From contig CM106586.1 in NCBI GenBank assembly GCA_048013815.1, forward strand, positions 4,650,001 to 4,714,000: 64,000 bases of DNA. Reading direction: 5' to 3'. This document shows positions 1 through 25,800 of the stretch, in pieces; position 1 is the stretch's first letter, and every line of letters starts with the position of its first letter. The stretch is from Setoptus koraiensis (taxonomy: Eukaryota > Animalia > Arthropoda). The position numbers and the translations under genes are program-made. The notes under the pieces were generated by a model. It was not told the origin of the DNA. It was given only the letters and a program-made list of their open reading frames with translations, and did no database searches.

Positions 1-3000
1 TATCGTTTGGCCAGTCTCGAATGCTTTACAAGCACCATCGGCCGAACATAAGGTAGGCAGGCCGTATTCGCGAGCAATCACTGCACCATGACTTATTATG
101 GCTCCGATCTCAGTAACGATACCTTTCAACATGGGAAAGTAAACTGACCAGGACACGTCTATACTATATGTGATTAAAATATCGTCTGGTTGTAAATCGT
201 CTATTTGTTCTATGCGCTGAATGACGCAAGCCCGGCCAGTAACCAGGCCGGAACATGATGTTATACCTGTGATATTCTTTGACTGACCACCAGGGGTGAT
301 AGCATCAGTTACATCATCTTTTCCATGAGTTGACTGTTGTTGTTGTTCACACAATACCGGATCTGTAACCTGTCTAACTATTTCAGCAAATTCCTCAAAT
401 TTCATATCGATCTTACTAAATTGTATCTTGTTTAGAGTTGACATTCGTTGCATTCTCCTTCTTGCTTTATAAATTAGTCTTGATGCTGGAACTGTTCCCT
501 TGATTAATTGCTCTATTTCATCGAAGCGCATATGAAATATTAAATCAACACTGGGCAACTTGCCAACTAAACACAATTGTTTGGCCAGTTGTCTAAACAT
601 CATCCTATATCTGTGAATTGTGAGTATAACATACGATTTAGATTTCTCTCGACGTATAACAGCATTACGAGCTCTTGGCAAGACGTAATTGGAAAGAACT
701 GAACGATTTTTGACCACTTTGCTCAATATACTATTGACAAGTTGCTCTTCTGATTGTGCACCTTCGGCATTGTTGTTCTCTTGATCTGAATTCTGACTAG
801 CACCGGTATCTTCATTACTACTAGAAGTCTTTTGTCTCGTGCTGTCACTATGTTTCACTCTCACACAAATAGATTTTACTATGTAAGAAGGGTCGTCGCT
901 CCATGAAAGAGAGCCAAGATCAAATTCTTTGTAAGAGCGATGTCCATTCTTAGACATAAACTCTGAGAATAATTGACTGCACTCATGGGTGGTTGTAGTC
1001 AAATAATTGTATGCCTCTTTATCATTAAATGATTTGAATTCCTCTAAAGATTCGCTGTTTTCAACAATAGATCCCACAATAGAGCTTAATAACCCAGCAA
1101 CATCTGAACTCTCAGACTTGCATGCTTTTTTCATCAAACAACTAAAATCGGTAACATTTTCCTCGGAATACATTTCGATAGGTACTTGACGTTCCGACAT
1201 CATCTTCAACATGATAGAATTCATGAATATGCTGACCAAAGTGCAACGGATATGATCAGACCAAGCAGAAAATAACATATCCGTTTTGTAAACAAGTAAA
1301 TTGAACAGGCTCTCGATTTGATCCTGGTGATCTTGATTGTCCTCGTCAACTTGAGTTGCTGATGAGGCCTTAGTTTTTTGATATGACTGCATGATCGGGG
1401 ATTGTGTTAGCTCATCCTTCTTGAATTCTTCCGAAACAATTGATGACGACTCTAGTTCATCGACAAATTTGCATAACTGATTAGTATCTTTAAATAATTC
1501 GCCCATAATTTTGTTGTTCTTATGTTTCGTGTGCCACTGTAGTGGGCCAGTTATGAGCTCCAGCGTAATTAATTTCGTCCAATGTATATTTGGTCTTTTA
1601 AACAATGGACTTGAGCGTTCTTTACACATTCTAAGCAGTTCTTCATCGTGAACTTCACTGTAACCAACAAATACCTGCCATGGGCCACGCTCACCTGGCA
1701 TATCGTAGGATAGCGAGTCTGTATAGGTTCTACAAAGCGTCACAACATTGGCGTAATTTGAAAAGCCCATCGTTGTACACGGTATGGCAGTGTGGTTGGC
1801 TTCGAAGGGTTTTAGGGAACCTCTTACTATGTTGGTCATTCCAATAAAGTAGCTTATTCCCAGTGTTGAGATCGAGTCAGGGAAGACCTCGCCCACATTG
1901 GCTCGAGACAGAAGCTCTTTGGGACTGCAAAGGCCAGAATCGCATTCATGATCTATCTCATAGTTGTCTAACTTGACCAAATTCGTCAATGGTCTCGATT
2001 GTAACAGGTAGATCTTCGTCAACAATTTGTTTTTCTTCTTTTTGGCTGCACTTTTCTTTGTGTTCTTCGCTTCTGTTGGCTCCTCTTTTTTCTCCGTATC
2101 AGAAGACGAAGAGGAGGACGATGATGATGATGACGATGAATCTTTTGTTATTGATTTATCAATCATTACTAAACCCCATTCTATTTCTCTATCTTGATTG
2201 ACGTCATTCTTGTTCTTGAGCCACAGGAATATTCTGGCTAAATTTTCTATTTGTTCATCATTTAAACAACAAGATTTACTCCTAGTTTCATCCTCTATCG
2301 CCAAACATCTTGTGTAGCCATTTTCTAGTTCGTGTTCGTTGTTTTTAACACCAGTCAATGATGTTTTTTTGGACACTTCCGCACTGTCGCTCGTTGTTGC
2401 TCTAATCGGACCAGCCGACGATCCCGCGATATGATGATGGTGATGATAATCAGACGCCTTGATTTCGACGCACTTGTTGCCTATTATCTTCTCTATGTTA
2501 ACAACCGTTTGCTCATTGCTCTTGTCCACAAGTGACACTCTACCATCGGTTTGTCGCACCTTAACCTTGACTCTTATTGTGTCCGGCTGACAATCGCCGA
2601 TGGTACCCACAACACTCTCGCCAAGTCCATAATTGGCTGTTATAACTAATTGTCTTGGATCGCCGCTGATGGGATCGCAAGTCGTGGCCACACCGGCCAC
2701 GTCGCAATCAATCAATTGTTGTATAACTACCGCCATTGGAGTGTTCACCGGTAAACCATTTTGGATTTTGTAAGTCACTGCTGTTACATCGAATTGGGAT
2801 GCCCAACACTGTATGATCGATTTGTATATTTGATCGAGTGTTCGCAGGCCCAAAATGGTCCTCATTTGACCCGCGCACGATGTCTCAACACTGTCCTCGC
2901 CCACCGCCGACGATCGGCAAGCATACAAATGCTCGCTAAAGCAACTAGGCCCAAAACAGCTAATCAGTCTACTTCGTATGGTGTCCATTATAATCCAGGG

Positions 3001-5257
3001 CAAACTGGACTTGGTTATTTTTTGTTTTGTTTCCAAGCATTTCTCTTGCATAATGGACTGTCTTTGTGCAATATCGAGAAAATCCTTAGAATATCTATTG
3101 TGTACGCCACTTTTAACGGCGAGAATTTTGCTTGTTTTATCCAGATTTATGATGGCCTCTCTCACTAGTGGGTCACTTCGAAGCCACAGTCTGTAAGCTT
3201 CCGTGGTGACAATAACACCGTTTGGTACATCAAATGGCACTTCATTATCATTGCCAAACGACACATGATCATTGGACAGATTGAAAGCAAGATTGGCCAA
3301 TTGTATAAGCGAGTTGCCCTTGCCGCCACACAATTGTTCGTCCGCCAATCCGTTTGACAACAATTGTAAATCTATTTTAAGATTGTGACCACCATTCGTT
3401 GATTGATTATATACTGCTGACTTGGATGGATCGATTATCATGGCCAACAATCTCTTTTGCACCTCAAAACTAGTCTTGTGTTGTTCCTCCAATACGACCA
3501 TCGCGTAACCACTAAAGCCATTTATCTCTATGGGAATGGGTTGATTGTGCTGATGATGTCGATTTGTTTTCAGCCTGATTTTGTATTCTTTTTTCTTGAA
3601 TGCCGTCACCACTAGTTGTATGCTATCAGTGAAATTCAAGAAGCTATTGTATTCACCAATTTGTACACTTTCACCAGATTCAACTGTTCTGATGAAAAAT
3701 TTACTTATTGGACTGCAATAGTCAAAACCGCTGTGACAATATCCATAGACAATATTTTTATAGATTAAATTCCTCACCAATTCTACAATGTGACCGCAAT
3801 CGGCATAGCACAATAATCTTTCATACTTTCCACCATAACGACAACTATCCTGGTCGTTGTTGGCATTAAACAAATAACTGTAATTGGTCAATGTTGATTG
3901 ACCAATCATTGGACTGCTGTGCTGATCAAAAACACTATCCTTTTTCATTGGCACCAATGGGCCGCCCAAATTTGCGATGACAAATTGATCCATTAAGACA
4001 CTGGACATCCGTTTGTAGGCCTTGTTGCCTTTAACGCCCCACAAATGATAGTCGTTTCGTAGACACGACGACCCAGAGGAACTATTACTATTATCGGAGA
4101 TCTCTATTGTTCCCTGAACCATGCAAGGTTGATCGATTCTGTCCTCCAATATTCTATCTAGAGCCTCTTTAATTTCAAACTCTAGACCATCGTCTGGCGA
4201 AGCAATAATTGCTGTGTGCGATGTCACATTATGATTTTTGTTTTTAGAAGAATTGCCAGCCACTACGGGTGATGAGCCCGAGCTGGCTAGCGGAGTCAAA
4301 ACAGCGGGCGAAACAGTGGAATATTCCATGCCGTATGTTTTTTCAATTGTTAGATCGTGCATTAATTTATCTGGTTCCATTCTGTAGGAAAAATCAAACA
4401 CATCGGCGCACGGATGTGTGGAAAATCGCATTTTGACAAACACCAGCTCGTCGTCGTTGTCGCCATGATACACTGGTGCTGCTTGTTGGTCATCCGTTTT
4501 GGAACATTCTGGATTCGGACTTTTCACACCAGCGACTGGCGACAAACCCTGACCATCAATTGAGGTCCCTGGTGAAGAAGATGGCGAATTGTTTAATTTT
4601 TTGCACCGCATAAAACCATTCAGACGTAATCTGGCAAATCTAAACGGGTAAACAACTTCGTAACTGACAGCGCCGATGTTGTATTTGAGTTCTTGATCAC
4701 TCAGTCGCATTTGTTCATCCACGAATATCGCCTCATCTTCGTATGATAACTCAACATTGTTAGTGGGATCTCTAAAGTCTAGACAGACCTTCAAATGGTA
4801 GTGCGACGATGTCTTTTGGCTTGAGTCGATTTGTCGAAATGTTGTATCCGGTAGTAAGGTCTGTTCCTGATTGTCAATAAAGTTGGTCTTTGTCAATGAG
4901 AACGCAATCGACTGACCTAAGGCGCCGAAGGCATGAATAGTGACACAATTGTCGTTCTCGTCGGACTGAAAAGAAGAGATGAGAGTGTTGGACAAGTGGA
5001 TGACCAAAAGATCAATTGAGAGAACTTGGTCACTTTGTTGACATAGATATTCTAGTTTACATTAGATCACTCACCAGCGCTAACCGCTCCAAATCGATTA
5101 TTTTATCCTCGGGCAATATTCTCAATGATCTTGCATCTCTAACTTTGAAAGGTTTCTCTGGATAGTAGCGATTCTTGATTTCTTTACCTCTGGACTTGAC
5201 AATGCCTCGAATGGCAGCAAAATGTTTTAGTTTCGAGGCGTCTGATTGGCCTGGCAT
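1..5257 (-). CDS. Rifampicin phosphotransferase (RPH)/YvkC/PigC-like PEP-utilising enzyme (ATP-grasp PPDK_N + substrate domain + C-terminal phospho-His swivel domain) with long N-terminal extension; 3' end truncated by the window edge
   Basis: Exon 1 is 5257-5075 (ATG at 5257, GTGAGT donor). A 109-nt phase-0 intron spans 5074-4966 (ends ttttcAG). Exon 2 runs from 4965 to <1; I read every codon and found no stop (1655 codons), giving >=1716 aa in total. Motifs: GGKGNSL (3327-3307), RSSAVGED..SCAGQ (from 2916), CWASQF, MAVVIQQLI, ANYGLGESVV, EIEWG, LLQSRP (2007-1990), RANVGEVFP, NGHRSYKEFDL and VTEIGAIISHGAVIAREYGLP (His codon 90-88). Confidence 0.92.
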
Positions 5258-8190
5258 TGTCAAGGACTCCTGACGAACTACTCAGAAAATATTTGTATAT
5301 ATATACCGATCGAATATAACGAGATAGGAAATTATCACATATAGTTACAATATTGTTGTGATCCAACCAGCATAAACTGATTCCCATAGTCAACATAAAT
5401 CTTTCTGTGAGTCAGGTAAGACGCGTAGGCAAACAAGTGGCGAGAGAGGAGCATCATGCCGGTGTTAAAATTTGCCCAAGGAGGGGCTCTACAGTCAAAC
5501 TCAGGCCCCCATCCACACTATACAGTATAAGTGTATATGTGATGGTCTCTTTGCCTTACAAGTACGACAATAAGCAAAGCTCAAATAGAAAGCTAGCCAT
5601 CTACTTACAAAATTGGTGATAACCTCTGTATTTGCTTACCTGATTGTGTGATTGTGTATTGTATTGCAATTGTATCATATAGATTGCTTTGTGCAAAATA
5701 TATTGATGCAACTTATTTCAACTTAAGGTGTCTATTTTGATGGCAGTGTCACATCAGTTGATGTGTGTCGTTTATTATGCAAATATGGTCTCTGGTCTTC
5801 AATAGTAAACTTTGTTTATTGTTCTTATCTATATACTATAGTGACTTAACTAATTAACTTAGTCACACTGCAAGTTCACGCATACATGATTTGTTGATAA
5901 GCATAGAGATTGAAAATTACTAATAATACTAGTTTCAAATAGACGACTATAGTAGTCTGTTGTGTCCACACTGATCATATACCTATTGTATAGATTGTTT
6001 GGCTAATACTGATGATGATTAAACTTTACAGAGTCACAAGTTAACTTGAATGACTATATAATGTGTGGAGGGTGCTCGAAACGACCATTGTCACATTGTT
6101 GTCGTGCGCGATGGACATCAGTGCACACAAATTGCACTTCCTAATTAAACATCAATCAATTAATATTATTACCTAAATGAAAGTTTTTCCTCAACAAACA
6201 TATGATATGACGAGCTTCCGTTTTCTAACAAATAAGTGATGATGGTGTTGCAGAATTTGTTTTTATGTATGTCTGTGTTTGATTTCCCTCGCTTCTCTAA
6301 AATGATCAAGATGTTGAAAATTATTACATATTGCTTACAGCTTTCAGCATATTAAATCGAATTAACTATTTGAGCGATATCCCGCGGCAAACGAAAGGCA
6401 ACTATGCGAGCATGCCTGTAACAATAACAATTGACCTCATTGAACGATAGGTACAACACTAAATCTGACAAAATCTTCATTTAATTTACCCATAGATCAG
6501 GCAGGCAAACTCATCAATGCTCATCCAACAGACAACTGATAGATACTTTATCGCATCATTGAATCTTTCAAGTAAACAATTTGTTTAGTTGCTCCTAATT
6601 TCATTCACCGACACCAGCAATATGGCTGTTTTTCATCGATAGCACCACCGCCACCATAGCCAATGATATCCTCATTGAGTACTATCATCAGATCACTATA
6701 TATAAATATAAATATATATATATTTAATCTGAAGCTTTCTCCTTGATCAGATAGGCCGGCATAAATCTAGTCACGTTTCTACTACCAATGACGCTAACTA
6801 TTACCATTATAACAATCATTATTATTATTATTATTAATATTAGTATTACTGTTTTCAGCATTTCTATCTGGGCTGGCAAAAGTGATCATGATGGCGATAT
6901 AGATATTGTCATTAGTAACTTTTGATGCGATCGAATGATACGTTAACTATATCTTAAGATTGCATTCGCGGATGCTTATAATCAACGCTTGCGAGCACAA
7001 TTCGCTAGTTGTGTATGTCTAAAATATAGAAAAATAATTGCTTTATTTCTGGTTGATTGTGATTTAGGTCTTTGTTGATCAAATGGTCTGTTTCTCATCA
7101 TGCACTCCAACTAGCGAGCATTATTTGATATTATTTAGGCGCTCTTGAAAACAATGGTCGCTATCCGATCATTTTCAATGTATTTATGCTGCGTTATGTC
7201 GCATTAGTAATTGGTATTGTGCGATAATAGTTGTCAGCAAATAGCAACTACAACCAGGACACAATGACACTTTTGATTATGATAATAATGAGCAGTTAGT
7301 GAGGTTGGCAAAATATGCAATAATAATGATAATAATAGATAGATAAACGTCGAGACGAAACCAGACCAAACTACCACAAAAACCACATTCATTTGGAGAT
7401 CATCGACATTTCGAGAGAGAGTTGTCCAAATACTGCTGTTGTAGCTTGCATTATTATAACGCTCAATTTGGGTTCTTATCAATACTATTATGATCACTGT
7501 GTGGTTATTACTATTATCATCATCTAGTCAAACTGAACTCGTCATCGCTCGATAGTGTCGAGAGACATAGCGACAAATAGCGACAAATGCATGACGGCAA
7601 ATGACTGGCACTAGTTGCCTAAACACACCCATACAAATAATAATAGGAGATGTCTCTCTGTCTCAAAAATAGCCATCTGCAGCAATCATTGTTGAACAAG
7701 ATACACAAATAGTCTAGTTAGAGAGTAACATTTGAATTGTGCCATCGCAACAATCAACAATATAATAATAAATATCATTATTATTGTTGTTGCTATATAG
7801 CCAGACATTTCAGCACATATTATATCAAATCAAATCGAAACATCCAAGGGAGGTTCATACAAGGGAGGCTACCTCCCTACCCTCTCCTACCATTGATCCT
7901 ATTTCATTATTATTAAATTTTTGTATTTTAAATGACTCAATTAATCATAATAAGAAGGAATAACTCAAATAACGCCAAACTCATATTGTAGTTTGAATTA
8001 TCCAACAATTTTTCAAATTATCCATTTATTGCGAGATACAAACACACAAATTTGGATAGAAATTCAGATTGATTAATTATAGGTGTATTAACATGATCTA
8101 ATAACTTCTAAACAGAAACACCATCGAAGTGCATTCTTTTATCAAGACCTGGGCCCTCAACAAACTACTAAATCAGTGTTGTGTTGTGAC

Positions 8191-9837
8191 ATGTCTAATA
8201 TCGTTTGTGCGAATAGGAGGATGAAACCTAGCGAAACAATTGTTGCCAGGAAACATGTTGAGCTTTCATTGGAGCTCAAGAAAAAACTTATACAAGAACA
8301 CGAGCATGGGGTACCATTTGCACTATTGGGCAAAAAGTATCACATAGCCACTTCGACGGCGGCAAATATTTGGCGCAAAAAAGAGTTCTTTCTTAGATCA
8401 AAAATGTCTGGCTCACGGAAGCGCTGCAATGATCGTAGTAAGTACAAATTAGTCAATCAAGTAACAGCGATATTTGTTAGGAATATGCTTCAGACAGATC
8501 ATAAAATTGACGGCGAAGTGATAAAACGTTTCGCCAGGACAGCTGCATCTCAGTGTAATTTTGGTGATTTTCATGGCAGCAATGGGTGGCTAGATTCATT
8601 TAAGAAAAGAGAAAATGTTAGATGGGTGAAGCGACGCAATCAAAAAAACCCAACAACTGCCAATAATAGTAATATTAATTCTAATAGTAACGATAACAAT
8701 AATAATATCGAGCCTGTTGGTCTAGACAATAACTCAATTTTGGGCGATAGATGTGTTCGCATGGGTGATATAATTAAGTCCAAGTTGGGCCTCCCATTTG
8801 ATATAGCCCAATTGACTGGAGATAGGCAAGATATCACCAATAATAATAATAATATCAACAATAGCAATGGCCATCATGAAACATCAAATGGTGATAGTAT
8901 AATTGATGAATGGTTTTTAGGCATACCATTGTTATGTAGGATTTTTCAAGAGAAACAACAAGATAACAAAACCAATAACAACAACAATAATAATATTAAT
9001 AATAGCAACAGTAGTATTAGTAATAACGATGATTATAATAATGACGTCATTATTGGTGGTAACAATATCAATATTACTAATCATGGTGATGATGTAGACG
9101 CAACAAACTTGGATCTTCGCTCAATAATATTGGACAATGACGAGACATTGTCAAAAGGAAATCTTTTCAATTATGAAACAAATAGTAATCTTGCTGATAA
9201 GATTGATGAATATTGTCAGTCGATCAAGAAGGAGGAAAATGAATTAATCTTGTTGGCCTCACAGGAATTGGAGCAAAATTCTGCAGCATTAACAGGTAAT
9301 TATGCATTAGGCGATCAAAGGGATTTCAATTTAATTCAACTGGATCATAACAACGATTGTAATAATTGGCTCTCATCAGACGAAGCCAACCAGTATCAAG
9401 AAAATAATAACCTACCTGCTATGTATACAAATTTCGATGGTGTTTGCTCTTACAATGAAGAGGAAATCCATCAACAGGGTGACAATGGGCAAATTTGTGA
9501 TAATTGCTCCTATATTGAGGATCATCATCAGCAAGACAGAGAGATTTGTGACACTTGCGCGTACAACGAAGAACATCATCAACAGGAAATGTGTGACAAT
9601 TCTCTAATTGAGGAAATATTATCAGAAAATAACACTGATAATACCGATAGTTTTCTAGATAACAACAATGACTTTAATTATGAAGATGAAATCCCGTTAG
9701 ATAGATTCACTGTAATGAGATCAATGGTAACACTGTTACGCTACGCCAACAGGTACAACCCTTGCATAATGAATTTGTTGATGAGAGTCAAACGATCCAT
9801 CGACCGTGATTTAGACAACAACATGGAACCTTTGTAA
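8191..9837 (+). CDS. CENP-B/Tigger(pogo)-derived DNA-binding protein (HTH_psq-like + HTH_Tnp_Tc5), no DDE catalytic domain; probable domesticated transposase
   Basis: Intronless ORF; first ATG at 8191, alternative at 8221. RKHVELSLELKKKLI...KKYHIATSTAANIWRKKE fits the CENP-B N-terminal HTH. FHGSNGWLDSFKKRE is the Tc5/CENP-B HTH signature. The rest is Asn-rich/acidic low complexity ending in a short helix. I saw no terminal inverted repeats. Confidence 0.8.
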   Translation: MSNIVCANRRMKPSETIVARKHVELSLELKKKLIQEHEHGVPFALLGKKYHIATSTAANIWRKKEFFLRSKMSGSRKRCNDRSKYKLVNQVTAIFVRNMLQTDHKIDGEVIKRFARTAASQCNFGDFHGSNGWLDSFKKRENVRWVKRRNQKNPTTANNSNINSNSNDNNNNIEPVGLDNNSILGDRCVRMGDIIKSKLGLPFDIAQLTGDRQDITNNNNNINNSNGHHETSNGDSIIDEWFLGIPLLCRIFQEKQQDNKTNNNNNNNINNSNSSISNNDDYNNDVIIGGNNINITNHGDDVDATNLDLRSIILDNDETLSKGNLFNYETNSNLADKIDEYCQSIKKEENELILLASQELEQNSAALTGNYALGDQRDFNLIQLDHNNDCNNWLSSDEANQYQENNNLPAMYTNFDGVCSYNEEEIHQQGDNGQICDNCSYIEDHHQQDREICDTCAYNEEHHQQEMCDNSLIEEILSENNTDNTDSFLDNNNDFNYEDEIPLDRFTVMRSMVTLLRYANRYNPCIMNLLMRVKRSIDRDLDNNMEPL

Positions 9838-10479: not shown

Positions 10480-11142
10480 ATGATGAAGGATTCTAAGAGC
10501 AAAAATTCGGTTGGACAGAGGATAGATCCGACGGACGATCCTCGGGACTATTTATTCAAACTAACTGAGGATGTCCGCTCACAAGTAGACAGAATGCTTA
10601 AATCGAATAGATGTAATATTGATGAGGAATTGAAAGATAAGATTGATTCATTTCTCAAAGAAGATAACCTAAATTACGAATCTTTGAGTAGGTTGCATCA
10701 ATACATGCAACGTGCAGATCCCGATTACAACGAATACTTCTACCAATTCGAGTCACGATGTCAGTCTATACGGCCTCCACCAAGAGCTAACAAAGAATTA
10801 GAGAATAGGCTTAGATATCTCAAAAAAGTAGATTCCCAAAAGAATTACAACAATATGACTTCCATGTTTAATAATAACAATAACAATTACGAAGAAACGT
10901 CAACAGTTACTTCATCCCAAATGACCAAAGGCAGCCATATGGGTGAAATTAAACAATTGAGAGCAACAACTATTGCTGTAATTAACTCATTCCTAGTCTT
11001 CATATGTACATTTATATTTTGTTACAAGGCGGTTGAGTATTCAATGCATATTCCGCATATACCAACTCAAGTACTTTCTGGTTTAGCTGGTTCTACAATA
11101 GTGGCCATAGCAGAATTATATTTTCTGTTTCGGGTAGTATAG
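10480..11142 (+). CDS. TMEM199: V-ATPase assembly factor TMEM199/Vma12
   Basis: Intronless 220 aa. ELENRLRYLKK...YNNMT coiled segment followed by two C-terminal TM helices (VIAVINSFLVFICTFIF; VLSGLAGSTIVAIAELYFL), the Vma12 layout. Confidence 0.75.
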   Translation: MMKDSKSKNSVGQRIDPTDDPRDYLFKLTEDVRSQVDRMLKSNRCNIDEELKDKIDSFLKEDNLNYESLSRLHQYMQRADPDYNEYFYQFESRCQSIRPPPRANKELENRLRYLKKVDSQKNYNNMTSMFNNNNNNYEETSTVTSSQMTKGSHMGEIKQLRATTIAVINSFLVFICTFIFCYKAVEYSMHIPHIPTQVLSGLAGSTIVAIAELYFLFRVV

Positions 11143-20000: not shown

Positions 20001-20900
20001 ATCATTTGTCAGCAGTTAAGTTGAGTGTGGTCTCTGGGTCGGTCAGTCCATTGCGCTGTTGTTGTCCATTGCGCATCGACCAAATCAAATTCGTTGTCAA
20101 TCATAATACAGTCAGACAGATCGATCGAGAAACCTAAAATGAGAGAATACAATTCAAAGCTCATCCTACACTAGACCTGTCAACACCGAATCATTTTTTA
20201 CACAATGTCACCTGTTGTGCCTAATTTATTCACGCCGAAACATACATAATAGAATAGTAATATAACAAACAGTAGTCAATAATTTAATTTATTATATTCC
20301 ATCTTAAATAATAACTTAAACAACAACAACGAGTAAAAGATAAAATAAAATATTTCTGCATTTGCAACATTAACAATTGCACACACAAGCAATTGAATAC
20401 ATGCAACAAGATTATTTTGTCGTGTCACATTAAACCGACATCGCCTCAAAGTGTCTCTATGTGTATATATGAATAGTAAATATATTTCTCATAGCCAAAC
20501 AAACAAGATGTTTATTTCAAGAGTGATAATTAATGTAAGTAATGGTTGTCAACAATTATCTGTTTGTCGAGTTGTCGCAAATACGCCAAGCTATCCGCCT
20601 CGGCGAAACTGCGTTTGGATTTCGCGCGCCAAACCGAAACGCGCCCTTTATCTTATGCAAAAAGTTCTGCACTACATTGTAGAAACCATTCGTCAATATA
20701 GATCAATATAGAGAGGCCTGTCATACAGCGTGCCTCGTTACCAGATAGGATTACTTTTTATTTTAATCTAATTGATTTATTTTATTCCCTCGGAACATTA
20801 TCACAACTTGATTTATTTATCCTAACATCACACGATATTTCAAATAAAAAATCAGGCAATTATATATATATTGACTTTGAGCTGCAATATCAAGACAATC

Positions 20901-22853
20901 ATGATGATTAGTTCTTATCAGGAGTCACAAACTTACGACCCTTACCCAATACCTGCACCAATAACATTAAAAGCACATCCAGCCAGCATAAACGATCGAC
21001 AGCAGCAACAACCTAAACAGATTCCTAGTTCAGCAACACAATTAGAGAATGCGCCCACTTCCTTTGTTGACAGCTTGGCCACATTTACTTGGGAAAAGCT
21101 TAGAAATCAAACAATTAATCCTCTCATCGACAAAGACCTCAGCAAGCTAGATGATTCAAATAGTGATTCAAATGGCGAAATAATTGACGACGACGAAAGC
21201 ATTGCTGATCAGAGTTTAGATGATGGCCAGCCCAAGAATTCAACCAACACTATGGAAGATCAATATGAACAACGTCACAGGCAGCAACAACAACCGCAAC
21301 CACAACAACCGCAACCGCAACCACAACAACCACAACAATCTAATAATAAACAGTATAGAAAGTTGGAGCATCGCGGAGCAGATATTGGATATTCTCAAAA
21401 TTCCCAATACTCAAACCCAGTTAATCTGCCACTCATGACTACGACACCCGTAGAGCATTCAGAATCGGGTTCGTCAATTTCGACACCATTGATGGCCACT
21501 TCCACTGCGTCTACCTCATCGCCATCGGCCCAAGTCTACAATCAGTATAGTCCATATCAGCAAGCCAACAGCAAGCAACAACAGTCCTCGCCGCCAACTC
21601 GTCCTCTATCGATGGCACCGTACGCTAACGATCATTATCATAGTAGATCAGAGCCAACAAGGGTGCCCCAGTTCGATTCAATGGGTGAAATGTTTGATCG
21701 ATCAACAAAAACATATGAGCTATCTATGCTTAATTCAATGAGCCAAATATCTGCAACGCTCTCTAACGATAATAACGAAGCCCATAATAGACTTGTCAAC
21801 TCTCCCAATGCTGCCCTCAACTATAATCAACAATACAACAACAATAAAGACAACTCTTCTTCGCTGTCTAGGGAAAATCACCAATTACACTATTCGCCAA
21901 TTGGACTACAACATAACCACACTGAATTGAACAATAATCAAAAAAGCTCATCAATATCACCAATACTTAATAGACAATATGTAGAATCTAGTGATGACGG
22001 CGCGAAAATGTCGATCAAGTCAAATGCCGCCCAAGATCAACAAAGACAGGTTGACTTGCAACTTAAGCAACAACAACCAATCAGAGGTGTCAATGACAGA
22101 TATGTTAGCGCAAGTCAACAATATGCCGACGTGAACGAGTTGCAAGCCCTGATGAAAAATCTAAGCTACGCAAGCAACACCAGCCACAATGTTTCAAGTA
22201 GTCAGGACAATGTTAACAACAATAAAACGAACACACCGGCGTCTCATTCTGCAACAAAACAGTCAAATGATTCAACACCAAGCGGCCCACAGAAATATTC
22301 TAGTCAGTACCCATCATCGACAACTTCAAATTCTAAAGGAATTAACAATCCAACAGATAGTAGTAGCACCAGCACAACTTCGGCTATTATCACCGGCAAT
22401 AACCGTTTGCCGTCCATTATGGATAGAATTGGATCAATTGATAATGGTCCGCTATCAGGACAAGATGATAGATTGATCATGCGGGACATTGGCTCTTCTT
22501 CTTCTCATTTGATGGATTCCCAATCAGCGAACGACATGTCAGCGTCAGCATCGAGTATTGCTGATGAGTTTCACAATCATAATACCATTATTAGTCAGCC
22601 ACCATTGGATGTGCCCCCTGGACATTACGCTGCCTCTTTCATCAATGTGACAGCACCAATGATACCACCCCTGTCCGCCAGTGAGGCCATGGAAAATTCA
22701 ATACAAGCTGACAATATGTATCACGTTGTGTCGGTGGCACAAAATTCCGATCAGTCGCATATGCATCAAAACGAACACTTGAATAATACTGCTTTGAATT
22801 ACTACAACAATCCCATGGCTTCGACACATCAACAACAATCACAACAACAACAA

Positions 22854-22892
<39 letters not shown>

Positions 22893-25800
22893 CAACAACT
22901 GCAACAACAACATTTGAATGCCCAGAAAAACAATCTGCCATCGGGTTTGAATATGTCGACGGTCGCCTTGGACGACAATCAACGGTTGCGTTTGTACGGA
23001 TCGCCTAACTCACTTTTAAGCAAACGACCTGCTTATCTGCCACCAAGTGTGCCACAAGGTAATCAAGCAAGCGGATTTAGACCACCACAGCCCCTCTCGA
23101 GTAGTACTAAAATTCCGTCTGCTGTATCTAATGCAGCAGCCGCTCTAATGTTACCACCATCCATTATTCCGCCCCCTACATCAATATTAGCAGCACTATC
23201 ACCATCAACTCTATCACCTTATACAGGTTATGGTTCACCAGGATCAATGGCCTCAATTGTTGCGTCTTCTTCAACTCCAATGTCGCTATCTTATCAACCT
23301 GAGAGATATAATGCTGCCCTCACAACATCTAACGCTAATCATCAACAACAAAATCTTTCGCCATCAGCCGCGGCGGCCTCTCAGACAACTAGTGCCACAA
23401 CGGGTATAACCAACGGAAATAAGCCGCCCAATTCGGCATCAAGTACGCAGCAATCCATCAATACATTGACTGGTGGTGGAGCACTAGCGCCAACTGGTGT
23501 TGCCTCACCAAGTCCAAGCAATTCTTGGTCTAAGCGTCCGTTCAACATAACGCGGGTGGAGCACATATCCGCGGAATGCTCTAATGAGCTAATCAGAACT
23601 GTGATAATATTCAACGGTACATTCAAAGGTATTATCTACAGCTCTGGATATGTGCAAGATACGAATTGTCTTTATGTCAATGGTACAGGCAAGTCTAGAT
23701 ATGAGTTCAGTATAAAGCTGAATCAATGTGGAACTTTGGGTAGACAAGAGGAACGTAGACCTACGGGACCTGGTGAAGCTCGTAGGCGCGATCAGGTAAT
23801 GTGGAATACATTGTCAATACAATACAACACCATCATCGAACAAGAATGGGATGAACATTTTCGTGTTAGTTGCGAATACGGAAGTGATTTCTGGAAGACA
23901 ATATCATTCAATCCTTTCAATGTTGAAACAAACACCGGCTCACCTGTAGTATTTACAATCAATCCACCACAATGTCAAATGGAGATTTTGCGCGGACATG
24001 GTCAGATAGGACCTCGCCAGGACACAATATCTAGTCCCGTCACAGTTGGCGATCCATTGACTCTACTCATACATATGAAGAGTGAAAAAGGTAAGAAACA
24101 GAGAGAACCCAGATATAGAGAGATCTAGATTTATTCGAATGCGTGAGAATTAGTTGCATTGTCACCAATAAGTATGGCTGACATTGCATGCAATATTTTT
24201 CTACAACTCACTATAATTATCAACAACTCGATTTATTCTTCTATCTATAACCTCTTTCAGCTGGCTATGATATTCTAGTTAAGAATTGTGTCGCGCACAA
24301 TGGAGGTCACAATAGAATGCAACTCATCGACCAAAATGGGTAAGTAATCTTGCGGCTTTATAACGTTAGTGTTATCAAGAATGTCTAAGATTGAGTCTCA
24401 GCTTAATTATATTCTGGGTCAGTCATAATGTTATGTGAATGGCTCTCGTAAGATCTAGTTTACGCCTGCGTCTGCTCTGAGCGTGGCTACATTGTTACAT
24501 TTTATGACCTAATTAATCAATTAGTGAAGCCATTCTTCTCAACAAAAAAGTATAGATTCAAATTAGATTCATTTAAATTGAAACGGCTTAACATTGACCT
24601 CTATTCAGTTGATAGCATAGTGACCAGCAACGAGTTAAACAAGATTACTATTTTCTAACACTCATTTCATCCAATTGTTTACAACATGGTCGCAATAACA
24701 ACGAATTGTTTTTGAAACCCTAATCTTTTTATGGTCCACAACGACTTCGACAATCAACAAACTGATCCGGATGCCGAATCGCCCGTGACGTTATTATGTC
24801 TATTTGTCCTGATGCGGCTCATCTTCTTGAATTATACGCTCGCGAAATAAGATGTGTCGTAAACGAGCGCTTCATTAGTCCCTTCAGAGGAACCTATAAC
24901 GATAACGATCTTCGTCATGTTACCTTATACGCCTTCTTGAAGGCATTCCGATTCACAGGTAGTCCAGTATTATATTTGGAGTGCGAAATACACATGTGCC
25001 AGAGTGCCTGTCCGGTAAGTGTTGAAATTATTACGATATTTAGTGACTCTAGTCACTTGAATAGACATGGACATTCATGTAGATGATTGAACAAAGGAAT
25101 GTGGAAGTGCGCCATTGGCAGTGCGACGAAAATAGTGGTCTTGATTCTGAATAGGAACATGGCGAACCATTGTGATGATCTCTTTCGAAGGACAGTGAGT
25201 TCTCATGATGATGATAAGCGACCATGGAAATACTTCCACCAACACCAACTGGATGTGTGTGTATCTCTCTGTGTGGTTGCATCCATGTCTATTGAATTAT
25301 TTGTTCCTTGACGATGACAAATTTTCTCTTGGTACTATTCAATTCAATTCTGACCATACCAACATGTACCATGCCTTTCATGTGCAAGAACCGAGAAGGA
25401 TATTCTTCTCATGATATGGAGTATGCATCTACTAAGTGAGCTTGTCGATCATGCACTTGAATGATTGCAAATGTCTACTAGCTGAATGTGAAAAATGTTC
25501 CATGTCAATCATTACAGAATCCTGTGTATCTACCGTTTGGGTGGCTTGATCGACAAAATATTGAATTTGTTTTGTTAGAGTTCCTATCACATAAGAAAAC
25601 TGCCGTATAATAACACAAGAGTCTGCAAATTACTCATAACGAAAATACTCAATCCATCAATCTCCTGCTCTTTTCTCTATCCACATCGTGCACTACATCT
25701 GATATCTAGCCTCAAATGTGTTATTGGCGAAGATTGAGTAAAAGAGATACTGCGAACTCTACTATACCTGGTAATAATACTAACATGATAGGTGATACGG

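Follow-up and report, generated by a model that had tools for sequence, protein, structure and literature searches.

An RPH-type dikinase joined to an AttH-like double barrel in a mite genome: a candidate two-module enzyme of arthropods and a priapulid

Enzymes of the rifampicin phosphotransferase (RPH) type phosphorylate bulky phenolic or polyketide molecules, and YvkC acts on flavonoids. A structurally solved example is RPH-Lm from Listeria monocytogenes (PDB 5HV1, 5FBS, 5FBT), in which an ATP-grasp domain, a central domain, and a C-terminal swivelling phospho-His domain follow one another. A second point of reference is the anaerobic cholesterol pathway, in which an APH-like 25-hydroxysteroid kinase converts its substrate to a tertiary phosphoester, from which a separate lyase then eliminates the phosphate to yield a Δ24 alkene, a sequence described as "ATP-dependent dehydration" (PMC8449060, PMC11061730). 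Here, we describe a gene at the edge of a 64,000-nucleotide stretch of the genome of the mite Setoptus koraiensis (contig CM106586.1, positions 4,650,001 to 4,714,000; G000:C2:4650001-4714000 on a 24.5-Mb scaffold; hereafter, the window). Its predicted product combines features of both systems: a dikinase core of the RPH type is preceded by a double beta-barrel with the fold of the 25-phosphosteroid lyase (PDB 9FZN, 9G2I, 9G4C). RPH-Lm and the window protein have the domain order and His motif in common and their central domains superpose, but RPH-Lm lacks the N-terminal barrel. The lyase likewise works after a kinase, although its partner is of the APH type and is a separate protein (PMC8449060). 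Phosphoenolpyruvate (PEP) synthase and PPDK share the ATP-grasp and swivelling His domains with the window protein but carry a PEP/pyruvate TIM barrel and a centrally placed His domain, neither of which occurs here.

The gene lies on the minus strand, and its features are collected in Table 1. The frame running from position 5061 to 1 is the longest stop-free frame of the window at 1,687 codons, with the runner-up reaching 1,100. Given the local base composition, the chance of 1,655 consecutive stop-free codons is ~3e-49. As the first-pass annotation had recognized, this frame is missing from the program-made list of open reading frames (ORFs) because it passes the window end. Read from position 4965, exon 2 contributes 1,655 codons within the window and, when reading is continued in the genome, 16 more before a TAG stop at G000:C2:4649950-4649952; the predicted protein ends in ETGQTITLDATRGLCYIAQPGS. 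Nothing is therefore encoded beyond the His domain. The same annotation had considered that a PEP/pyruvate TIM barrel might lie past the edge, which would have made the protein a rearranged PPDK, but the stop codon occupies that place and Pfam finds no such domain (PEP-utilizers_C) in the frame. Upstream of exon 2, the in-frame stretch 5061..4966 lacks an ATG, and a TAA terminates it. Exon 2 has its first Met near residue 85, behind three strands modelled by AlphaFold with a predicted local distance difference test (pLDDT) score above 90, so an upstream start exon is needed. The nearest candidate is the 61-codon exon proposed earlier, across a 109-nt intron, and frame, splice signals, and genomic stop all agree with that model. 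The result is an intact two-exon nuclear arthropod gene of mite type with a predicted product of 1,732 residues (61 + 1,671). All searches reported below were run with exon 2 (L002:953-5965:-), whole or in part, and exon 1 was searched separately, the two never being joined. When exon 1 was compared with the poorly conserved N-termini of relatives, only a collinear match to P0001 was returned, which was not significant (E 0.16, -0.1 bits).

All motifs of the dikinase family are kept in a 60-sequence alignment: GGKG, RSSAxGED (here RSSAVGED), AGQ, EW, LQSRP, GHR, RExxK, and SHGAVIAREYGLP. This bears out the earlier reading of an intact catalytic set in an RPH/YvkC/PigC-type order with the His domain last, an order on which Pfam, the motifs, and the RPH structure matches concur. 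About 607 residues (61 + 546) precede GGKG, and the core comprises the C-terminal 1,125 residues, compared with about 880 in spiders, insects, and Priapulus; the His5 and Ser13 runs, both already noted in the first pass and confirmed here, add length together with other insertions. Among solved structures, the nearest are those of the Listeria enzyme (5HV1/5FBS/5HV2, E about 5e-42), where SHGAVIAREYGLP aligns with THGAVIAREYGLP. The AlphaFold model of exon-2 residues 990-1671 (pLDDT 73.6) matches 5hv3 with Z 15.4 and a root-mean-square deviation of 4.1 Å over 393 residues, covering RPH 319-750, and 5fbt with Z 14.0 over 426 residues. Only RPH aligns over the central domain of the model, the other fold matches being limited to the His domain. 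Relatives also carry the Rph_4th family (PF27448). The core is an RPH-type three-domain dikinase (ATP-grasp, central, C-terminal His). The best NCBIfam models were the PRK06241-type "PEP synthases", RedH, RPH, and PigC, with scores of 233 bits for PRK06241 (equivalog cut-off 883), 195 for RedH (NF052632, 1350), 195 for RPH (NF041857, 999), and 190 for PigC (NF052631, 1300). Judged by these profiles, the window protein is a relative of the RPH, PigC, RedH, and PRK06241 families rather than an equivalog of any.

The N-terminal ~500 residues adopt an AttH-like double-barrel fold and are homologous to DUF7065/DUF7064 proteins of bacteria. The AlphaFold model of this N-module has a mean pLDDT of 69.7; its beta core is for the most part above 90, and three insertions are disordered. 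Its fold matches (VIA Z scores) are AttH (2ich, 17.5), the fungal pericyclases Fsa2, Phm7, and CghA (16-17), kievitone hydratase (15.8), and the 25-phosphosteroid lyase (9fzn/9g4c/9g2i, 15.5-15.7); the next unrelated fold scores 8.3. Within this set, the lyase has the top sequence identity, at 12-13%. A hidden Markov model (HMM) built from 23 full-length animal members recovers the module in all of them at 240-430 bits, and R112, G117, G391, and G408 are invariant across the animal alignment. The arthropod HMM also matches, at 38-41 bits, the C-terminal DUF7065+DUF7064 part of P0039, an RPH-like dikinase fused to these domains on a bacterial-looking contig. When arthropod N-modules were aligned by hhalign with 15 bacterial DUF7065/64 proteins, the probability was 97.9-99.3% (E 5e-13 to 1e-19, 310-330 columns). 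Searched against the PDB, the profile of those 15 bacterial sequences had a sole significant match, the 25-phosphosteroid lyase (E 5.9e-11), with AttH next at 0.019. Other searches were silent: words taken from the N-terminal 560 residues gave no match, probably because low-complexity words swamped the search, and neither the N-module nor the P0039 barrel, each run through phmmer as a single sequence, had a match in the PDB. No match to Pfam DUF7064/DUF7065 (PF23212/PF23213) exceeded gathering cut-offs in the window protein or in the whole genome, and some arthropod relatives do carry PF23212 (Pfam 38.1).

In bacteria, this module keeps company with kinases. Of 301 Actinomycetota genomes sampled, 41 encode DUF7064. 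In five of the 20 loci fetched, an RPH-like dikinase ends immediately where the DUF gene begins, six are fusions of an EcKL/APH-type kinase to DUF7065/64 (about 660 residues), and in one further locus an APH-like gene lies 3.5 kb from DUF7064. Two dikinase-linked cases lie beyond these 20 loci, namely, the P0039 fusion and a pair in L012, from an Actinobacteria metagenome-assembled genome, where the order is a TetR/MerR regulator, a 1,550-residue RPH-like dikinase, a 373-residue DUF7065/64 protein, and a flavin adenine dinucleotide (FAD) flavoprotein. FAD oxidoreductases adjoin three of the bacterial pairs. The dikinases linked to DUF7065/64 form one clade, and the seven barrels linked to them outrank every other bacterial match of the arthropod module (31-67 bits versus ≤29 for the rest; rank test p 1e-4). 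Because these barrels are kin, this ranking is a lead and not seven independent observations. Placement of the module downstream of RPH-like dikinases, or in fusion with kinases, suggests a pair that joins a kinase to phosphoester processing. The EcKL/APH fusions are candidate single-chain kinase-lyases akin to the 25-hydroxysteroid kinase and 25-phosphosteroid lyase. The Actinomycetota pairs (L012, L029, L032-L035), the fused P0039, and the EcKL/APH fusions thus share a kinase-linked barrel with animals, but the module order is reversed, the bacterial barrel being downstream or C-terminal and the animal one N-terminal. The bacterial barrels also keep the full polar motif set, unlike the window copy. 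The earlier statement that nothing in the bacterial enzymes corresponds to the ~600 residues ahead of GGKG is accordingly wrong, since the module matches DUF7065/64, is fused to a dikinase in P0039, and is encoded downstream of dikinases in Actinomycetota. As a separate observation, the L012:1082-5734 and L032:2963-7540 dikinases (about 1,530-1,550 residues) have a duplicated central + His half with two PEP-utilizers domains, and both have a MerR-TetR fusion regulator and a flavoprotein of the fumarate-reductase type as neighbours.

A word search based on the core retrieved ~27 animal proteins, which span 1,050-1,550 residues and carry the same Pfam domains. Their hosts are spiders, the mites Dinothrombium and Galendromus, a stick insect, a termite, ants, a bee, midges, an aphid, and Priapulus; example genera are Uloborus, Argiope, Parasteatoda, Galendromus, Dinothrombium, Ooceraea, Zootermopsis, Clunio, and Priapulus. 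Spiders have many paralogues, and a word search with a spider N-module returned spider paralogues only. The proteins are named "putative phosphoenolpyruvate synthase", "uncharacterized phosphotransferase YvkC-like", "prodigiosin synthesizing transferase PigC-like", or "rifampicin phosphotransferase-like", in line with the first-pass remark that "putative PEP synthase" proteins are annotated in some other invertebrates. They share with the window protein the architecture (N-module, ATP-grasp, central, and C-terminal His domains), the motifs, and the clade; identity to it is 25-44%, and disordered insertions make the window protein ~400 residues longer. The animal sequences all fall into a single clade, with 100% support, in maximum-likelihood trees built on the core. 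The window gene, on a long stem, is sister to ten assembly-derived proteins (35-44% identity) and falls in a mite-like group with Dinothrombium and two full-length paralogues of the same genome, alongside trombidiform and other mite-like sequences. Both paralogues are apparently intronless and have G-A-K-A in place of G-G-K-G as the first ATP-grasp motif. The window gene is thus a divergent mite-subfamily member of an already annotated, misnamed arthropod family. The unrooted tree divides cleanly into three groups, namely, animals, DUF-linked dikinases, and the remaining bacterial dikinases, and it did not single out the DUF-linked bacterial dikinases as sister to the animal clade; bacterial ancestry of the animal gene is plausible. 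The animal gene is old, given its presence in arachnids, insects, and a priapulid.

The literature we found contains no functional study of the animal family, which appears in two passing mentions only: loss of a "PEP synthase" is reported for psoroptid mites (PMC9113151), and partially fed Ixodes ricinus are reported to have a "PEP synthase" contig 451-fold over-represented in the midgut (PMC5099782). Genome pipelines have already predicted the family in hundreds of arthropods under the misleading name of PEP synthase. What is added here is the identity of the N-terminal third and the recurrent partnership of that module with kinases of two unrelated folds.

The polar residues of the barrel bear on what it does. 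The bacterial family has three invariant blocks: W-N-E-S-x-Y-F-N-F-x-D, H-Y-E-Q, and G-x-G-x-R-D-H-S-W-G-x-R-D-W. Compared with 9fzn, the product complex of the lyase (PDB 9g4c) carries Asn for Asp in R-D-R-S-W-G, and from this variant the Asp of R-D-x-S-W-G is likely to be the catalytic residue. Counterparts of the third block in animals are listed in Table 1. In the window copy, the polar set reads D-N-C..A/G, R-I-D-Q, and G-V-K-G-N-K-A-Y-K-R and departs from that of the 25-phosphosteroid lyase; what is left of it is D-Q, Lys for Arg, and the last Arg only.

Taken together, these data make it fairly probable, with appreciable room for doubt, that this is a functional nuclear arthropod gene for a two-module enzyme, in which an RPH-type dikinase and a barrel handle the same molecule and the barrel serves, in this copy, mainly for binding. 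By analogy with the RPH mechanism, ATP would be held in the ATP-grasp domain and would phosphorylate His1687; the phospho-His domain would then swing over to the central domain and the phosphate would pass to a hydroxyl of a lipophilic small molecule, with release of AMP and Pi. The N-module would act on the same molecule as the kinase. Handling of the kinase substrate or product by the barrel is proposed because of its fold and kinase linkage. In the ancestral pair, the module probably processed the phosphoester, for example by phosphate elimination, which would amount to net ATP-driven dehydration; in the window copy, it most likely holds or presents a hydrophobic substrate or product.

Several points weigh against this assignment. 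Every NCBIfam score of the core is far under its equivalog cut-off, the predicted exon 1 rests on splice signals and logic, and the substrate and chemistry of the animal family are what we infer. The AttH-like fold by itself does not give chemistry, because it also houses hydratases, cyclases, and pericyclases, and we infer the catalytic status of the motif Asp only from the D-to-N variant 9g4c. That Asp is replaced in 22/22 arthropod sequences examined. The window copy alone has, in addition, lost N-E-S (now D-N-C, with the position-58 acid gone) and the position-66 Asp/Asn (now Ala/Gly), whereas its nearest relatives keep the N-E-S and G-F-D positions. With the motif Asp and both these positions gone, a catalytic role of the window N-module is doubtful, and the module might be decaying. 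Going by its residues, it more probably binds substrate than catalyzes.

A broader proposal covers the whole animal family. Animals, at least Ecdysozoa, may possess single-chain kinase-lyases derived from a bacterial dikinase/DUF7065-DUF7064 pair, which would carry out ATP-driven dehydration, or another reaction with phosphate as the leaving group, of a lipophilic alcohol such as a sterol, ecdysteroid, or terpenoid, with the barrel of the mite copy now a binding module. We regard this as unlikely. To our knowledge, kinase-lyase dehydration driven by ATP has been described for no animal enzyme. For the family as a whole, the testable hypothesis is that a lipophilic alcohol is phosphorylated and the phosphoester then used or bound; should elimination hold for less degenerate members, a kinase-lyase would be a new reaction type in arthropod lipid or hormone metabolism.

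A stricter version, in which the window protein itself is an active single-chain ATP-dependent dehydratase whose dikinase phosphorylates an alcohol (sterol, ecdysteroid, or terpenoid) and whose N-module eliminates the phosphate to leave an alkene, is improbable. Homology of the module family to the 25-phosphosteroid lyase speaks for it, as do the repeated fusion to, or adjacency with, kinases of two unrelated superfamilies, the published kinase/lyase cascade (PMC8449060, PMC11061730), and the FAD oxidoreductases beside three bacterial pairs. Arthropods also mostly keep part of the polar set, namely, an acid at position 58 (20/22), the D/E-Q of H-Y-E-Q, and Lys/Arg for Arg234. Set against this are the loss of the motif Asp from all arthropod copies and, in the window copy, of the position-58 acid and position-66 Asp/Asn as well.

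The first-pass annotation had proposed that the enzyme could phosphorylate and detoxify plant phenolics or flavonoids in a plant-feeding mite. On this view it would be a xenobiotic kinase whose N-terminal part adds a substrate unit found only in animals. The intact dikinase core and the phenolic and polyketide substrates of RPH-type enzymes fit such a role, but the distribution of the family does not. Predators and blood feeders (spiders, Galendromus, ants, tick; PMC5099782) not only have the family but have it in expanded form, and it also occurs in midges, a marine priapulid, and a velvet mite whose larvae are parasitic. Because predators and non-herbivores carry the family and a homologue is induced in the tick midgut (PMC5099782), it is not tied to herbivory. 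The N-module, moreover, is not animal-specific. We therefore consider plant-compound detoxification unsupported and distinctly unlikely.

It is very unlikely that the gene is a decaying or non-functional copy, a bacterial contaminant, or an assembly artefact. The long low-complexity insertions and lost conserved N-module positions would suit decay, but the 1,732-codon frame is unbroken (p about 3e-49), all core motifs are intact, the intron is of spliceosomal type, and the gene sits inside an animal-only clade. Contamination, already doubted in the first pass, is rejected along with a pseudogene: given the chromosome-scale scaffold and the eukaryotic neighbours (Vma12, cuticlin-N, Tc5-HTH), the dikinase gene is a resident eukaryotic gene. 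Finally, identity as a true PEP synthase (pyruvate, water dikinase), for which the names of relatives and the PPDK_N and PEP-utilizers domains might argue, is rejected as extremely unlikely, because the protein lacks the PEP/pyruvate TIM barrel (the ORF stopping 16 codons past the window edge), has its His domain at the C-terminus and not in the center, scores 152-161 bits against PEP synthase cut-offs of 598-740, and has a central domain that matches the rifampicin-binding domain of RPH.

Table 1. Features of the dikinase gene, its paralogues and neighbours, and counterparts in other genomes (positions are those of the window unless a genome or locus coordinate is given).
Feature	Position	Strand	Basis or remark
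Exon 1	5075..5257, 61 codons, ATG at 5257	minus	ATG is the first after an in-frame TGA; GT donor at 3' end
Intron	4966..5074, 109 nt, phase 0	minus	GTGAGT..polypyrimidine..TTTCAG; in-frame TAA inside
Exon 2	1..4965 in window, 1,671 codons in total	minus	open frame + genomic stop
AttH-like / DUF7065-DUF7064-like double beta-barrel	3475..4965 (exon-2 residues 1-497)	minus	AlphaFold 2 model, fold search, hhalign
Degenerate counterpart LWGVKGNKAYKR of G-x-G-x-R-D-H-S-W-G-x-R	4009..4044	minus	Lys312 for Arg, Gly313 for Asp
ATP-grasp nucleotide-binding domain, PPDK_N (PF01326)	2170..3336 (exon-2 residues 544-932)	minus	Pfam 1.7e-42
GGKG motif	3316-3327	minus	within ATP-grasp domain
His5 low-complexity insertion	2431..2445 (residues 841-845)	minus	
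Ser13 low-complexity insertion, EW-LQSRP interval	2101..2139 (residues 943-955)	minus	
Central helical domain, RPH rifampicin-binding equivalent	385..1950 (residues ~1006-1527)	minus	AlphaFold 2 model, NCBIfam alignments
Invariant R-E-x-x-K	637-651	minus	invariant alignment columns
C-terminal swivelling phospho-His domain, PEP-utilizers (PF00391)	1..192 (residues 1592-1655)	minus	Pfam 5.5e-14
Phospho-His codon	88-90	minus	His1626 of exon 2 = His1687 of protein
Tc5-transposase helix-turn-helix (HTH) domain only, 553-residue open frame	8176-9837	plus	just upstream of dikinase gene
Vma12-type V-ATPase assembly factor	10480-11142	plus	ordinary eukaryotic/ecdysozoan neighbour
1,085-residue open frame, weak cuticlin N-terminal domain match	20871-24128	plus	just below Pfam cut-off; likewise an ordinary eukaryotic/ecdysozoan neighbour
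Paralogue, 1,425 residues, single frame	G000:C2:18561894-18566168 = L013:1394-5668	plus	barrel + dikinase
Paralogue B, 1,395 residues, single frame	G000:C2:7898169-7902353 = L014:2169-6353	minus	barrel + dikinase
Fragment, 82-residue open frame	G000:C2:7976434-7976592 (L015)	plus	47% identical to window residues 727-779
EcKL/APH-kinase::DUF7065+DUF7064 fusions	L017-L021, L025		Actinomycetota genomes G257, G112, G140, G153, G070, G179
G-x-R-D-H-S-W-G-x-R-D-W counterpart, Priapulus			G-V-R-E-H-S-F-G-I-R-D-W
G-x-R-D-H-S-W-G-x-R-D-W counterpart, insects			R-G-L-R-Q-R-R-W-G
G-x-R-D-H-S-W-G-x-R-D-W counterpart, spiders			F-G-E-R-L-R-F-L-G
G-x-R-D-H-S-W-G-x-R-D-W counterpart, mite subfamily			W-G-A-K-V-K-R-F
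G-x-R-D-H-S-W-G-x-R-D-W counterpart, window gene			L-W-G-V-K-G-N-K-A-Y-K-R

Members of the animal family differ at their N-termini. The spider and ant homologues P0011 and P0018 begin with a hydrophobic stretch that is signal- or anchor-like, and the Ixodes midgut contig bears the label "SigP". Because the window gene shows no comparable stretch in exon 1, subcellular location may differ among family members.

The G+C content of the gene resembles that of its surroundings. The frame with the Tc5-type HTH domain is either a pogo/Tc5-derived gene or a transposon remnant. Elsewhere on the scaffold, the short fragment similar to the window protein lies ~76 kb from paralogue B and is probably a pseudogene remnant of the family.

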